Shown here: positions 11,500-19,400 of the stretch, in pieces
Layout of the letters: every line of letters begins with the position of its first letter
How positions within the stretch are numbered: position 1 is the stretch's first letter
Notes under the pieces: model-generated
Told to the model about the DNA's origin: nothing
The model's input: only the letters and a program-made list of their open reading frames with translations
Database searches by the model: none
Assembly: GCA_907165135.1 (NCBI GenBank)
Contig: OU015568.1
Span: forward strand, 9,672,001-9,736,000
DNA from: Oikopleura dioica
Taxonomy: Eukaryota > Animalia > Chordata
Reading direction: 5' to 3'
DNA length: 64,000 bases
Program-made: the position numbers and the translations under genes

Positions 11500-14033
11500 T
11501 ATTTATTCAATTTTCAAAACTCGGGCGATATTCTTCTTCCTCCGGAAGATCTTGGACGAAGAATGGGATTCTGAACTGACGAAGCGCGGAAATCATTTGA
11601 CGGTATTCTCAGCCTGACTTTTGAGTTTTCTCGCATCGCGCTAGAATCTTGTGAGCATTCATTGAAATGACCGAACTATACCTTGTTATTCCATGTTGGA
11701 TATAATCGTACATTTTCGCTTTGTCAGTCTTGTAAGTCTTCGCCATCGCTTCTATCGCATCCATCAGCTTCGGATCAGCACTAAAAGCGACTCAAAAAGG
11801 CGCATAAAGTCGACAACTCACCCTCTGTGAGACGTAGACAGCTGTTCTGCAAGATCTTCGATGATTTCTACGTTCAAGCTGCTCATGTCTGTCATCACCA
11901 TCGTTAGATTCGCCTCGGAAAGTCGCATCACACCACAAATCTTTTGCAAAACAGATATTTCTTGCGCTGCCTTCGTCTTCATATTTTTAGCTTGAATGTT
12001 TAAAGAAATGAAGATTCACTATTAAAAACATACCTGCTAGATCTGCAGATATTTTTTGACGCTCATTCTGAATTCTGAAGGTTTCCTCGAACTTAATTTG
12101 CTCAAGAGCAGAATCGCGCAGGACGCCATCAAATGAGATGTGGTCGACGTTGTCATCAAGAGAATCGATTCGCTTCGTCACCGAATCATCTTTTTTCGAA
12201 AACGATCGTTCTCGTTCTATATCTGCATGCTCTTCAATTCTAGCTTGCTCAGATTTCGAAGACTCGTAAAGGCGGACAATGTCGCTCGGTTCAACTCCTT
12301 TCAATCGGTTTTCAAATGCAGTAACAAAGAGAATCCCTTTCAGGTCAATAAGGGTCTAAAACATAAATACGCAAATGTTCTAAGATAGATTTTTACCTGA
12401 TAGATTTCCTTGTATTTTAAGACTTTCTCAAGTCCATTCACGCGTTCTTGCACTAGAATCTCGCCAAATATTTGAACAAAAAGCTGATCACTTCCTCTCG
12501 GATTGTTTTCGTTCTTAATCTCTTTGAGTTCTTCTGTAGTTTTTATAAAACAAGCCGTCCATTTTTCTTCGTAGTCAACGAGGCGATCAGAATAGGACCT
12601 GTCACGAACGATGTTTTCGAATTCTTGGTGGTAAGAAACAATGAAATTTGATGATGTTTCTGCAAATTTTTTCGTGCTACTTTCATCTTCCAGTCGCTCT
12701 TGCAGTTCTCTTTGAAAGGAATAGTTGACTGCATAGTAATCTATGTTTATACCTTTTTTGTTCTTTAGAAAGTGTAAGTTCTAAGAGCGACCTATTGAGT
12801 TTCTTCGCTTTTGGCCTTGAAGACTTTGAGCTCTTTGTGTTTCTTCGAAGCGATTCATCGAGAGAATCTTTCGTGTCTCTGTTTCGTCGATTTTCTGATT
12901 CATCGACAAAATCTTGAAGCTTTCGGAGTTTCTGGCGGTCCATTTTCAAGTCCGACAAGTAGTTTTGAAACACTAAAAATTTTTATTTCAATGTCATCTT
13001 TTTATTCACCTGAGCAAATTCTATTAGCCATTTGAGCTTCAATGTTCGCCACATCTTTCAGAAGCTTCGACGCACTCTGAAGATCAAAGTCCGCTAGAAT
13101 ATCCAAAAACTCGCTCAAGTCAATGTTTTTCAAGTTCTTTCTCGCCAGAAGATCGGCGATAAACTCTCGTTTTGCTTTTTTGAAATCAACAACGATTTCG
13201 TTTTCATGATCGTCAAGAGCATCGTCCAACAAGTTGTTGAATTCGTCGCGAATTTGTAGAATTTCGCCGAGAACAGAATTCAGCATTTCCTTTTTTCGAT
13301 TTTGGGGAATTTTTATTTCTGTTGCAATCGAATCTAGATCACTTTCGATCTTTTCTTTCGCCGTGTTCCAGTCGGACTTTCTTTGCTGCCAGCGATAAAC
13401 CCATATTTTCGCAAGAGCCAAACGGTTTTTCAGAATTTTTTCGATTCTAGCTTTATATTTCGATAACTCATCGGAAAAGAGATGCTCAGCATCTCGCAAA
13501 AGCTTGTATTTAATTTCTCCAGTCATGTAGCCGAGATCAAGCTGTGAAGCGAGTCGCGCGAGTTTGAGTCTTTGGACATTTTCAGACGTATCTTCGAGAT
13601 CTTTGAACGCTTGAAAAATGTCTGAATAGAGGTGTTCCTCGGATCTTTTGATTTCGTCGAATTCGCAGTTGTGCGCGCTCTTCAACTCATGATCGAATCG
13701 ATTTAGCTTGACCTCGAACTCTTTCCGCTGGTAAACATCGTTCAGAAACTCAAGTAGATCGCGTCGGATGTGTAAGCCACTTTCCCAAGTCTTGAATGGT
13801 ATCAGCGGCGTCGATTGAAACAAGTGCCCGGCGAGAATGATCTCGTCATCGTGAAACTCATTTGGAGAAAAATCTGGCTGGATGGAATTCGGGTCTAGTT
13901 TAGATGTGTTTTTGACGCTTTGAGGGGGCTGTTGGATTGTCTTAATTCAGTAAATTAAGTTGTTTGTCTCTGATCCATTTCTTGCCTGCTTTGGTTGAGC
14001 TACATTCGCGCTTCTTGAGCTGTTGCAGCCCAT
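11500..14033 (-). CDS. Long coiled-coil protein with N-terminal MGCNSSR acylation signal
   Basis: ATG at 14033 (MGCNSSRSANVAQPKQ); 45-nt GC-AG intron 13941-13985 joins in frame to ORF 13002-13823; further E/K/L-rich exons at 12683-12973 and 11987-12304. The 3' end is approximate. Confidence 0.7.
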
Positions 14034-14367
14034 TTTTCTCTTGGAAAAATTTAAAAACGGAAATAGTAAAAACGCGTATTCACGCGCAAAGGTGAATTTG
14101 GGGTGTCATTTAAATTTAACAACACAATTGACAGTGAGATGAAAGAAAATGCTGAGTTCCGTGGTTATGACAACCACCTGAGGCTCCAGCCAAAAGTTAA
14201 ACATTGATAGTGAGACATCAATGAGTCCTTAAGTTTATGAGCCAATATCAGAAAGATTGGACCTTCTCTGATAGACTATCAGTGATAGAATCTCTGAAAT
14301 ATGAACTGTATAAGTAAAATAGACTGTACAAATTTATTGTCTCTTATGCGGAGAATAATAATACTCT

Positions 14368-16372
14368 TTACAGTCGTTGGCGTAGATAGTTTCGTTCCTT
14401 TCTGACGAAGTTTTCACTTGTTCGGGAGACGCTAAGCTCGCATATTCATTTTCTAATCTTGCCAAACTTTCACGAGCAATAGAGAACTCGCCTTCTTCCA
14501 TACCTTCACCAACGAACCTTAGACGAATGTTAATTTGTTGGTATTAGTACTGATGAATTTACCAGTGAACAAATGCTCTCTTTGCATACATCAAATCAAA
14601 TTTTCGATTGACCATTTTAAATACTTCTACGATGTCAAGTCTATTTGTAACAGAGCAAACTGACGGATCAGAAGACTGCAGATCGTATGTTCTTGGAAGA
14701 GGTGGTGGTTGCGACTTCGAAGAGTTAAATGCAAGTGACTTTTATCGTAATTTTATTTTTGAACTCTTCCTGAATTCGAGCAGGATTCCAATTTGCAGAT
14801 TGAGTCCTATTTTGGCAAAAATTGAATTCTTTCTTCAGTTTCTGTATTGTTTTACTGATAGATTCGCTTCTTACATTTCCACGGTATAATAAAGAAGTGC
14901 TCAAAAATGGACCTTCTGACTTTTGATTACTTATCGAAATGAATTGATTCTAAAAAAAATAAAGATGCAAACACAAAATTATTCTTCTAACCTCAGACTT
15001 GAAGCAAAAACGACTCATCTCATGAATCGAATTGTTTTCTGCAGTATTCTGGCTTTCCGGAGAAATAAGAGGAGCACATGAATATGAAAGATAATTTATC
15101 CTTGGCTGCGGAACAAGACTGTTGATAACATTTGAAAAGTTTGCTATCGATGGATCTGTGAATCTTGTAGATGCTGTAATTGACGAAATCACCTTTCAAA
15201 CATGAAGAATATTTATGCTGAAAGAATGTTTTACCTGTGCAATAAGGCGGTTCGTATTATAAAAGCTCGGTATTTCTACGTCCAAATAATTCTGGCATAT
15301 TTTATATAAAGCTTGATTATCGAACATAATTGAACAGCTAGAAAGATTGCGTCCGTACTGTCTTCCAGCATACAGGAGGGCATTGTAAGGTTCGACCACA
15401 GAAGACGCAAATTTAGGCGAAATAAAAACCGGCACTTCCATAATCGGCACCTTAGTTTCCTTGATATATTCAAGGAGTAAGGCCGTCAAGCCAGAACCAG
15501 TTCCACCACCATGAGAATGATACACAATTATTCCTTGAAGGGCATCGCACTGTTCTTTGGCGCTTTCTACATTTTTCACCAGAGGCTCAATTATTTCCCT
15601 TCCAATCGTATAATGTCCTCTTCCATAGTTACTAGCAGAGTCTTCCTTGCCGTTTATCATGAGCCGTTGATTGTAAAGAGATCCGTAGATCGAGTTTTTG
15701 ACAGCATCAACGACATTCGGCTCTAAATCGGCCATGACTGCCCGTGGAACCGCTTTTCCAGTTGCTTCAGAGGGTTAAATTTGAACTGTTGATTATTCGT
15801 ACATTATATATACAGTGCATATTCAACAATTCCTGATTGATAGAAAAAGTCTCGTATGAGTTGTCAAAGGTCGAAAACGAGTCTTCAGGAATGGTTCCAT
15901 CAGGATTGATGCCATGTTCGTAGCAAAAAAGCTGCCAAGAAGCGGCGCCGATTTGAATTCCCGCCTGACCAACATGAATCGATAATATTTCTCGAGGACT
16001 TCTATCTACTCTTTCTCTTGCTCCAAGAGGAGGTGGAGTAATAGGTGGAGGGCTTGGACTTCGTGATCGTGGTGGTGGAGTCTTTGGTTTAGGCTTTGGT
16101 TTTTCTCGTCTAAGTTTTTGAAAAGATCTCTTTTGCATTTTCGCACAATTTACTGGGATGAATATTTTGCGCTTATTTGCGGAGGGAGCCGACTAATTAC
16201 CAACGATCGACATTTTGATTACCAATGTTCATTAATTTTAAGAAAGTCTAGTGATAAAAACTTTTCCTTGAGTTTTTGGTTTTTCTCGCTTATCTTCATC
16301 CTTATTGTTTGGCTTTTCAACAAGGTTATTTTTCTCTGGTTCAACTACATTTTTTGACTCCGAGCAGCCCAT
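14368..16372 (-). CDS. Divergent alpha-tubulin-like protein with acylated, Pro-rich N-terminal extension
   Basis: [78 protein letters not shown] and [11 protein letters not shown] match alpha-tubulin. Exon 16262-16372 (MGCSESK...) joins in frame via GT-AG intron 16193-16261. Splicing at about 14720-14830 is unresolved. Confidence 0.85.
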
Positions 16373-16984
16373 TTTTTGATATCAGATGAGTTTTTGACGG
16401 CATTTGTCAGGAGGAGGGTTAGTTGTCAATGGACACGAGAATAAATAAAGTTCTAACAATTGCTGTTATCGGCAATGTCTAAACATCGTAGTGATGGCCA
16501 AAGGGAATCAAACATTCTCTGTGGGAAGCATTTTTTCCTACGAAGGATAAGCGAAAGTGGGTACGCCCAAATACTGTGTATGTGGCTTGTGGTATGCTTG
16601 TTGTTAATTCCAACATTGGAAATTTGCATCAAAATAGCAGTAAGTTACCATATAAATATTAATTTTCGATGAAAAAGTTCGAGTTTGAAGATGTGCTACT
16701 TGTAAAAAAATAGTTATTTTTTCTCGTTGTATAATTCTAGCACTTTTCTAGGTGGAGATTTTGTTAAGATTATGCACGGAATTTTTTACAAGAACTCATA
16801 GAATGGGTGGAACCTAAAGCTGACTATAATTTGTGTTTTCTAAATCTTACAAAATAGTTAATGTCACGGAAAAACGACACGTATTTCTATATTCAGTTAT
16901 ATTCTTATGAGTTCAATATTATCTCTAGAACATCACTTATTATCGTTAGATTTTTTCAATACCGAGATCAGTTTGAAAGCGTAA

Positions 16985-19400
16985 AAATGGACCCGACACG
17001 CGCAGGGATTTCCGCCTCTGCTACAGAAGGGCTCAATCCAGACTCCCTTCAGTCAATCATCGAGGACCCAGAAGGAAATCCCTTTGAGATAATTCTTCCT
17101 GATGATAAAATGTAAGTTTTCACGGTATAACGAATAGCTTTAGTCTAATACCTACAAAATTTGTAGGCTACAAATTAGCATAAATTTTAATAGCCCTTTT
17201 TAGTGATATAAAAGACCTGGCGGACGAAGCAGCCGATTTGCGCTCAAAATACGAGACCTGCGAACAAGTTTACCTCTGGGCGTGCAGGAAACTCGGCTGC
17301 ACTCCCGTCACTCCTTTCATCAGAAATATTAATCAGGAGCTTTGCAATTTAGGTGAGTTCTCAATTACTTTTTCCCACAACAAGCTACTCTTAGATGACT
17401 ACGGCCTCGGAGAACGAGGAACAAAAGCGCTGTCAGTGTCTCTCATCATCAATACAAGCATAATCAGACTTCAATTAGCCAGCAACGCGATTGGTGGCAA
17501 TGGAACTTACAGTATTTGCAACATGCTGAAGGAGAACTGCTTTATCACAGAATTGGTTTTAGGTGAGTCACAAGACCTGTAGCTTGCCTTCAGTAGCTTG
17601 TAATCGTTCATATAATTGACGTAACTTCCTACGTGGCAATGAGCTTCTGAGGAATTAAGGTTTTTGTGGAAATGACTCCTACCTGTAGCCCATTAACAGA
17701 GGGCTCCACTTATCGTTAGATTTTGCGTCTTAAAGTATTGGGCTACCTGGTAGACTCTACCTTCAAAAAGAAAAAACTGTGAAAAGTTTGTCTCAAAATC
17801 TAAGGCTTATTTTCTCACTAGTTTCCGAAGATAGGCCTACACTTTAAAGACGCAAAGCTAACGATAAAGCCGCACTTTTAGAGGGGCCCTCTTGTATCTC
17901 TAACGGTACAAGAGTTCAATTTGTACCTCTCATATCTTTTACGTTGGTTTTTTTATGACAGGACAGCAAGAAAATTTGGTTTTACGAAAAATGATAAGCG
18001 TAGATTGCTTTTGCCCTAAAACAGTGAAAAAGACTTGTTGCCGCGTAATGAATATCTTTAAGGGTTATGCTAGCTATTTACTTTTATGCATACTACCGAA
18101 AGTGCAAGAACACGTTTCTGCGGGTCTTCGTAGGGTCAACTTTCGCAAACAGAAGAATTTCGAACAAAAATCATTTCTATCGACTTGTAACTTTATTTTA
18201 GATAGCAATGATCTTGGCTCCTTTGGGGCAGAATGCGTTTCAAAAATGTGCGAAGACAACCGTTCAATAAAATATCTCTCGTTGCGAAACAACGACTTTC
18301 AAGATCAGGACGCGCAAATACTCTGCGATGGAATCAAGGGCTCCCTGACGCTCGAGTACTTGGATCTCTCACAGAACAAGTTCTGCGAGACCCAAGCTAT
18401 CGGCCAGCTGATCAATCAAAACGAGTCGCTCAAGACGCTGAAGCTGCACTGGAACATGCTCCGGCTCGATGGGATGAAAAGCGTCATCAGTGGATTAAAG
18501 GAAAACGTCAGCCTCAAGCATATTGACCTCAGTTGGAATGGCATTGAATCTCGTCATTGCGGCGAGCTTGCAGATGTTCTTACAAGTAAGTTTTCTTATG
18601 CTTCTGATCACATGGTCAATGGACCATGTTTTTAGATGGTGCGGTAGAAACGCAACGCAAGCAATTTGGTGTTGCATGAATCATGCAGCATGATGCAACT
18701 TGCATCTGTAATTTTAGCCTTGACAAATTTCTATCAATGATTGATAATCAATCTAAGTTTCAGATTAGAAGAAGGACACGTATTTGAGTTTAAAAGTAAA
18801 GTTCGAGTTCAGGCATACATTAATGTCACAATCATTGACGATGTCTTGGCCATTGGAATATGCCCGTTACGCACATAATTGTACCCTTTCAAAGTTCCCG
18901 GCAATTTTCCGTCATATCAGAACTCTTTTAAAATCGAATTTTGCCGAAAACTTTCTAAACTAGAAACACCTTTTTTCTTGCAATTATTCAACTCTTCTTT
19001 TAAGCAAACAACACCTTGCAGCAACTGAACGTCAACAACAACCGAATCGATCCAACAGGCGCGATGACGCTCTGCCGCGGCCTCCAGAACAACGAGTCAA
19101 TAACTCACTTCCACATCAAAGGCAATCCAATCGGCGAGGACGGCTTCAATGCAATCGTCAGCGCGATCATCTACAACACGCGAAACATCATCGAGCATCT
19201 TGAATTTTCAAAAATTGACTTTCCAGCGAAAGAAACTGTTGAACTCATGAAGGAACTCTCCCAAATGAAAAAGTCGTCTCAGTCTGATCATAACTTTCAA
19301 TTCTGCTGTTGATTTATTTCTCGACAAATAAATTTTATTTTTTTAATAGATAGAAGTATTCAACTTGAACCCTTTTTGATTACTTTCTCCATAATTTAAT
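16985..19400 (+). CDS. LRRC74-like RNI-type leucine-rich repeat protein
   Basis: YLWACRKLGCTPVTPFIRN followed by RNI-type repeats (LEYLDLSQNKF, LKTLKLHWNML, LKHIDLSWNGI). The family assignment comes from recalled motif similarity. Confidence 0.7.
17710..17867. repeat. Intronic inverted repeat with about 27-bp arms (MITE-like)
   Basis: ttatcgttagattttgcgtcttaaagt (17710-17736) is the near reverse complement of actttaaagacgcaaagctaacgataa (17841-17867). Confidence 0.75.

Follow-up and report, generated by a model that had tools for sequence, protein, structure and literature searches.

Met-Gly-Cys starts at two neighbouring loci of Oikopleura dioica: a divergent alpha-tubulin and an orphan helical protein that are probably adjacent by chance

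Introduction

As an N-terminal signal for dual acylation (myristoyl plus palmitoyl), Src-family kinases and G-alpha-i/o proteins carry a Met-Gly-Cys start with serine at position 6, a basic residue at position 7 and then a hydrophilic linker. A precedent for a dual-acylated connector between membrane and tubulin is STMND1, a stathmin of motile cilia that binds tubulin and is both myristoylated and palmitoylated (PMC11238091). In Oikopleura, an 'operon' is defined as genes on the same strand with a gap of at most 500 bp (PMC11067885). Here, we examine two neighbouring minus-strand loci in a 64,000-nucleotide stretch (the window, C1:9672001-9736000) of a 64.3-Mb, 19-contig genome of Oikopleura dioica, namely a divergent alpha-tubulin gene and the gene downstream of it, which we call gene B. 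At each locus a reading frame opens with Met-Gly-Cys (MGC), with ATGs at 16372 and 14033, respectively. The original prediction for this locus saw in the two genes a co-regulated module, in which an acylated 'pseudo-tubulin' and an acylated coiled-coil scaffold would tether microtubules to the membrane. Our comparisons suggest instead that these are probably two independent genes, which have become neighbours by chance in this lineage of a compact, heavily rearranged genome.

The two frames resemble the Src-family and G-alpha-i/o starts in all of the features listed above and differ from them in cargo, in this case a helical orphan and perhaps a tubulin, with lipidation predicted from sequence. 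Unlike STMND1, gene B has no stathmin-like domain or other similarity that we could find. By strand and distance (300 nt), the pair falls within the Oikopleura operon definition and would be a candidate operon; unlike what is expected of an operon, gene B has its own conserved leader, and the two genes are not found together in another lineage.

Results

Linkage and motif frequency

The prediction of two co-oriented, adjacent genes holds, as does the gene B start at 14033; the distance of 335 bp that had been given between this ATG and the tubulin stop does not, as the stop codon lies at 14336-14334 and the spacer measures 300 nt. For comparison, contigs L003, L009, L010 and L014 (with L011 and L007) were available for gene B, and L004, L005, L006 and L013 for the tubulin side. 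The linkage is absent from at least one other lineage: in L013, a contig of 8.5 kb, gene B is missing from the 5 kb 3' of the tubulin, where a BTB-domain gene lies on the opposite strand. In two further lineages, L010 and L014, no tubulin sequence is found in the 250-300 nt before the gene B leader. O. dioica has a great many same-strand neighbours less than 500 bp apart, and its lineages do not share them (PMC11067885); lost linkage is thus to be expected, since gene order is known not to be preserved between lineages. Control elements are likewise separate: a conserved leader belongs to gene B, and the tubulin ends in a probable poly(A) signal of its own (Table 1).

The genome-wide frequency of MGCxxS starts, proposed earlier as the null, could be measured. 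The pattern ATGGGNTGY(N6)TCN gives 111 matches compared to 56 for the reversed control, and requiring K/R at position 7 gives 27 compared to 9, while the version with an AGY serine shows no excess in the genome. Because of the 111 versus 56 matches and the lack of an AGY excess, we estimate that some 55 genes use an M-G-C-x-x-S start. With 17,291 genes in O. dioica (PMC11067885), the number of adjacent pairs expected by chance is about 0.17 with the loose motif, falling to about 0.02 when the strict motif is required. When the 111 sites are placed at random, 0.28 same-strand pairs within 3 kb are expected, whereas three are seen, two of which are tandem paralogs. Depending on motif strictness, the probability of chance adjacency is about 0.02 to 0.25; the earlier prediction had itself not excluded chance adjacency. 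The shared MGC motif would then be a signal used by some 20-55 genes in this genome and not a mark of partnership.

Neither do the two N-termini appear to be copies of one another. They share 0/9 free positions in an ungapped comparison, and the possibility that the two first exons are duplicates was set aside when their local DNA alignment was matched by 221/2000 shuffles (11%). Among 26 catalogued N-termini, the closest to the tubulin-side frame is that of a CAP-linked gene, and the closest to gene B is that of a GST_N gene at C1:6543142. This GST_N gene belongs to a tandem MGC-starting pair (C1:6541214/6543142, L001), and the CAP-domain locus at C1:2201417 (L023:1918-3472) has a 12-residue start in common with the tubulin-side frame. 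Such extended N-terminal likeness between otherwise unrelated genes suggests the reuse, or the convergent selection, of whole acylation cassettes.

Gene B

As had been predicted, the short exon that begins at ATG 14033 joins in frame, through a phase-0 GC..AG intron of 45 nt (13985-13941), to the long open reading frame (ORF) from 13940. In L003, L009, L010 and L014, exon 1 begins M-G-C-N-T-S-R, and the intron has the same position and phase as in the window, with a GT donor and a length of about 175-230 nt. Between the window and the other lineages, nonsynonymous differences (pN) are far fewer than synonymous ones (pS) both in exon 1 (pN 0.09-0.14 versus pS 0.78-0.85) and in exon 2 (pN 0.10-0.13 versus a saturated pS of 0.72-0.75), and no ATG occurs within the first 140 codons of exon 2. 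Because there is no other ATG, the exon and intron position are conserved and the substitutions are of the coding type, comparison establishes ATG 14033 as the true start of the gene B protein. In every lineage seen, the initiator Met of gene B is followed by Gly2, Cys3, Ser/Thr6 and a basic residue 7, and the same holds for the tubulin-side frame. In the case of gene B, this signal would most likely lead to myristoylation and then palmitoylation, and the protein would be retained at the membrane.

The remaining gene B junctions and the true C-terminus were fixed by the continuous frame of L011, which is 99% identical to the genomic L010 but without the 40-nt intron of that contig; two introns present in L014 are missing from L011 as well. 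Because these introns are missing, we take L011 to be a spliced transcript in an environmental data set, and this mRNA-like contig shows that gene B is expressed. The resulting 742-aa model comprises eight exons separated by introns of 37-45 nt. L011 itself, which is filed among the JGI metagenome contigs, contains a single in-frame stop, at a position occupied by an arginine codon in the window. Introns also turn over between lineages, as the 43-nt intron 3 of gene B (12752-12710) is absent from L009 and L003. In L008, an 800-nt ENA scaffold, parts of gene B occur in a different order than in L009, which is probably a mis-assembly.

Gene B is single copy in the genome, and only appendicularian-like metagenome fragments matched it in a representative-protein search, a word search and a scan of JGI contigs. 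Neither Pfam (above cut-off), PDB (with single sequence and profile) nor the ESM Atlas gave a match. A DNA pattern search of JGI metagenome contigs found nothing. Here and for the tubulin, Pfam and PDB searches were run exon by exon, and the joined translation served only as a check of frame and length. A distant homolog in L007 (32% identity) places members of the family outside the O. dioica complex as well. AlphaFold predicts exon 2 to be entirely helical, with long helices, at a low confidence (predicted local distance difference test, pLDDT, of 47.7) that is too uncertain for a fold search. On this model gene B is all-helical, and by the searches above it is an appendicularian-restricted orphan. 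We also considered gene B as an NYD-SP28 or dynein regulatory complex protein and rejected this candidate, since the match scores 14-15 bits compared to a cut-off of 27, is missing in the ortholog L011 and finds no counterpart in PDB. Of the predicted acylated coiled-coil scaffold, the helical character and the conserved dual-acylation-type start are thus retained, and a scaffold or microtubule role is not. The suggestion that the pair is ciliary or flagellar finds no support in gene B once the weak NYD-SP28_assoc hint is set aside, as neither Pfam nor PDB nor the Atlas gave it any connection with microtubules or cilia.

The tubulin gene

From ATG 16138, the tubulin model comprises six exons and 524 aa with zero internal stops. 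Introns in the window are tiny, with GC-AG and GA-AG types among them, as fits O. dioica. Pfam Tubulin and Tubulin_C are matched exon by exon (PF00091 with E 4e-32 on exon 15735-15199), and the best PDB matches are alpha-tubulin chains (E 1e-47). Like canonical alpha-tubulin, the protein thus has the GTPase and C-terminal domains, and its glycine-rich GTP-binding signature is intact. Unlike canonical alpha-tubulin, it has an N-terminal extension of about 50 residues, which is basic and proline-rich, its C-terminal tail lacks an acidic run, and the catalytic Glu of loop T7 is replaced by Asn, both in the window and in the ortholog P0012. It is 45-49% identical to canonical alpha-tubulins in a public protein collection, as measured over the largest exon, and 39-47% identical to the best-matching other tubulin genes of the same genome, with P0012 on L013 being the one clear ortholog (69-72% identity). 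The pN/pS ratio of about 0.18-0.3 points to purifying selection. Together, the sequences indicate that this is an intact, fast-evolving, lineage-specific alpha-tubulin paralog and a working gene. The term 'pseudo-tubulin' is therefore misleading, as purifying selection acts on a gene that has remained intact.

GA-AG introns are frequent in O. dioica (PMC7072748). One of them (14766-14715, 52 nt) interrupts the tubulin at the same codon as in L013 (3067-3126, 60 nt). An alternative-frame resemblance near 14800 had raised the possibility of a frameshifted pseudogene, which was rejected because L013 keeps the frame and the shared GA-AG intron closes the model; an 82-nt GC-AG intron near 14800 was dropped on account of the L013 frame and the GA-AG intron at that place.

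The frame upstream of the tubulin

The ORF from ATG 16372 starts MGCSESK, 234 nt 5' of the conserved ATG 16138, and runs for 44 codons to a stop at 16240-16238. Its first 14 codons show silent changes only when compared to L004, and pS 0.51 with pN 0.11 when compared to L005. In L013, the frame still lies just 5' of the tubulin although both flanking genes differ, and because it is retained there, we assign it to the tubulin locus. The frame looks translated and travels with the tubulin. That it might serve gene B as an alternative first exon was excluded, since in L013 it stays with the tubulin.

The claims that the tubulin is acylated and that both genes start MGC-x-x-S-[K/R] accordingly stand in part: the start of gene B, both ORF motifs, and the conservation of the upstream signal and its tie to the tubulin locus are upheld, while its join to the tubulin body, and hence a tubulin protein beginning there, is not confirmed. 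No in-frame splice from the MGC frame to the tubulin that is common to the three lineages compared was found. Between the MGC frame and ATG 16138 lies a 64-nt element that is identical to L004 in 63/64 bases and to L005/L006 in 44-46/64, with the reading frame through it broken in L005, L006 and L013. This element, which is more conserved than the adjacent coding sequence, could be an internal promoter or leader element.

Table 1. Features of the tubulin and gene B locus, in window coordinates.
Feature	Position	Strand	Basis
Gene B exon 1, MGCNSSR start, 16 codons	13986..14033	-	Same exon in L003, L009, L010, L014
Gene B exons 2-8	13940-13010, 12972-12753, 12709-12397, 12355-12034, 11990-11822, 11780-11682, 11640-11514	-	Junctions match continuous L011 frame
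Divergent alpha-tubulin coding sequence, 524 aa from ATG 16138	14334..16138; exons 16138-15814, 15764-15235, 15192-14992, 14949-14767, 14714-14563, 14517-14334	-	Pfam and PDB by exon
Conserved MGC frame, 37 codons to candidate GT donor at 16261	16262..16372	-	Conserved in L004, L005, L013
Conserved non-coding element between MGC frame and ATG 16138	16146..16209	-	Identity counts against L004, L005/L006
Ultraconserved leader or promoter block of gene B	14058..14171	-	Nearly invariant in five lineages
AATAAA, probable poly(A) signal, overlapping the tubulin stop codon	14333..14338	-	Read from sequence; function inferred
Divergently oriented leucine-rich repeat (LRR) neighbour, outside the pair	16861..18635	+	LRR_6 and LRR_1 matches; RNA reads; spliced joint 17111/17205

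Discussion

That the genes form a functional, co-regulated module, with an acylated tubulin and an acylated scaffold tethering microtubules to the membrane, appears unlikely to us. What speaks for it is that they lie 300 nt apart on one strand with both signals conserved, that the strict-motif null expects few such pairs, and that a two-residue gap brings out N-V-x-[E/Q]-P after the basic residue in both N-termini. These points are set against the absence of gene B downstream of the tubulin in L013, the lack in L010 and L014 of any tubulin sequence ahead of gene B, the separate control elements, an ungapped comparison and first-exon DNA similarity that do not distinguish the pair, the closer twin that each N-terminus has elsewhere in the genome, and a gene B product that has no microtubule-binding or ciliary homology. 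As far as the sequences go, the tether module is not supported, having found no positive evidence. Independence with chance adjacency, the account we prefer as probable, has several points weighing against it in turn. With about 18-20 real strict-motif genes among 17,291, only about 0.02 adjacent non-paralogous pairs are expected, so that the adjacency is somewhat unusual; lost linkage is weak evidence in so scrambled a genome; and L013 and the gene B contigs are not proven to be one genome. The RNA runs, which carry the same species label but come from a strain 5-10% divergent from the window, cover the pair hardly at all (5-9 partial reads per bulk run in the region and 0 at the tubulin 5' end) and are uninformative on co-expression and first-exon use.

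At the tubulin locus, the MGC frame could well be an alternative first exon giving a lipid-anchored isoform, or it could be a separate upstream small ORF of 32-44 codons, encoding a regulatory product or lipidated micropeptide, with the tubulin starting at ATG 16138. The latter is a distinct possibility, and the two are about equally likely. The small ORF is favoured by the conservation of ATG 16138 and the residues after it in all four sequences compared, by the conserved 64-nt non-coding element that precedes this second ATG, and by an in-frame TGA six codons before it in L005, L006 and L013, which makes the simple joins of the window impossible there; moreover, the GT after codon 37 of the MGC frame is displaced by one base in L004, and the stop position of the frame is common to the window and L004. 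On the side of the alternative first exon, most of the conservation falls within the first 14 codons, as would be seen for an acyl anchor and not for a stalling peptide, while the 24 nt past the candidate donor evolve neutrally as in an intron (18/24 and 13/24 identical). The window and the two most distant lineages, L005/L013, also have comparably placed phase-0 splice sites, namely a donor and an acceptor that follows a lysine codon, and the CAP-linked 12-residue start, with V/I as the sole change, heads an 80-codon ORF 5' of the CAP-domain ORF on the same strand. We hold only tentatively the fuller proposal, in which the alternative first exon would give a non-catalytic alpha-tubulin (T7 Glu to Asn) a genetically encoded isoform with a lipid anchor, and in which this isoform would be conserved across the cryptic species of Oikopleura. 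It is very improbable that one or both MGC starts are functionless chance ORFs: about half of the loose-pattern matches in the genome are due to chance, but both frames are kept across lineages in which synonymous sites are half to fully saturated, with amino-acid changes far fewer than silent ones, and gene B has no other possible start.

If the alternative-exon proposal is true, a lipid-anchored tubulin isoform could seed or cap stable microtubules at the membrane and would represent a new way to couple microtubules to membranes; no tubulin bearing an acylation signal at its N-terminus turned up in our literature searches. Gene B, for its part, is of interest as a conserved orphan with a predicted lipid anchor and an unusually constrained leader. 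The more general lesson is that, in this genome, two genes cannot be read as functional partners just because they lie close together and begin with a common short signal. Dozens of genes start with this signal, some unrelated genes have nearly the same version of it, and lineages differ in their gene order.

Other features of the locus

The leader block of about 114 nt lies just 5' of gene B and is nearly unchanged although the synonymous sites of the gene are saturated. It is single copy in the genome and holds a 9-codon upstream ORF (14109-14080), with the positions of its ATG and TGA conserved. The block may be transcribed; a few reads of the divergent strain fall within its bins. An RNA gene was considered here and rejected, with no Rfam family and no stable fold found for the block, as was an RFX X-box-like palindrome, the left half of which is missing from L014.

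The divergent neighbour had been named LRRC74-like. Its LRR_6-type repeats on the plus strand agree with this, and the name is acceptable only loosely. Single-cell RNA reads of the divergent strain show that this gene is clearly expressed, and at 17111-17205 they splice, leaving out 93 nt and carrying a single additional letter where the two ends meet.

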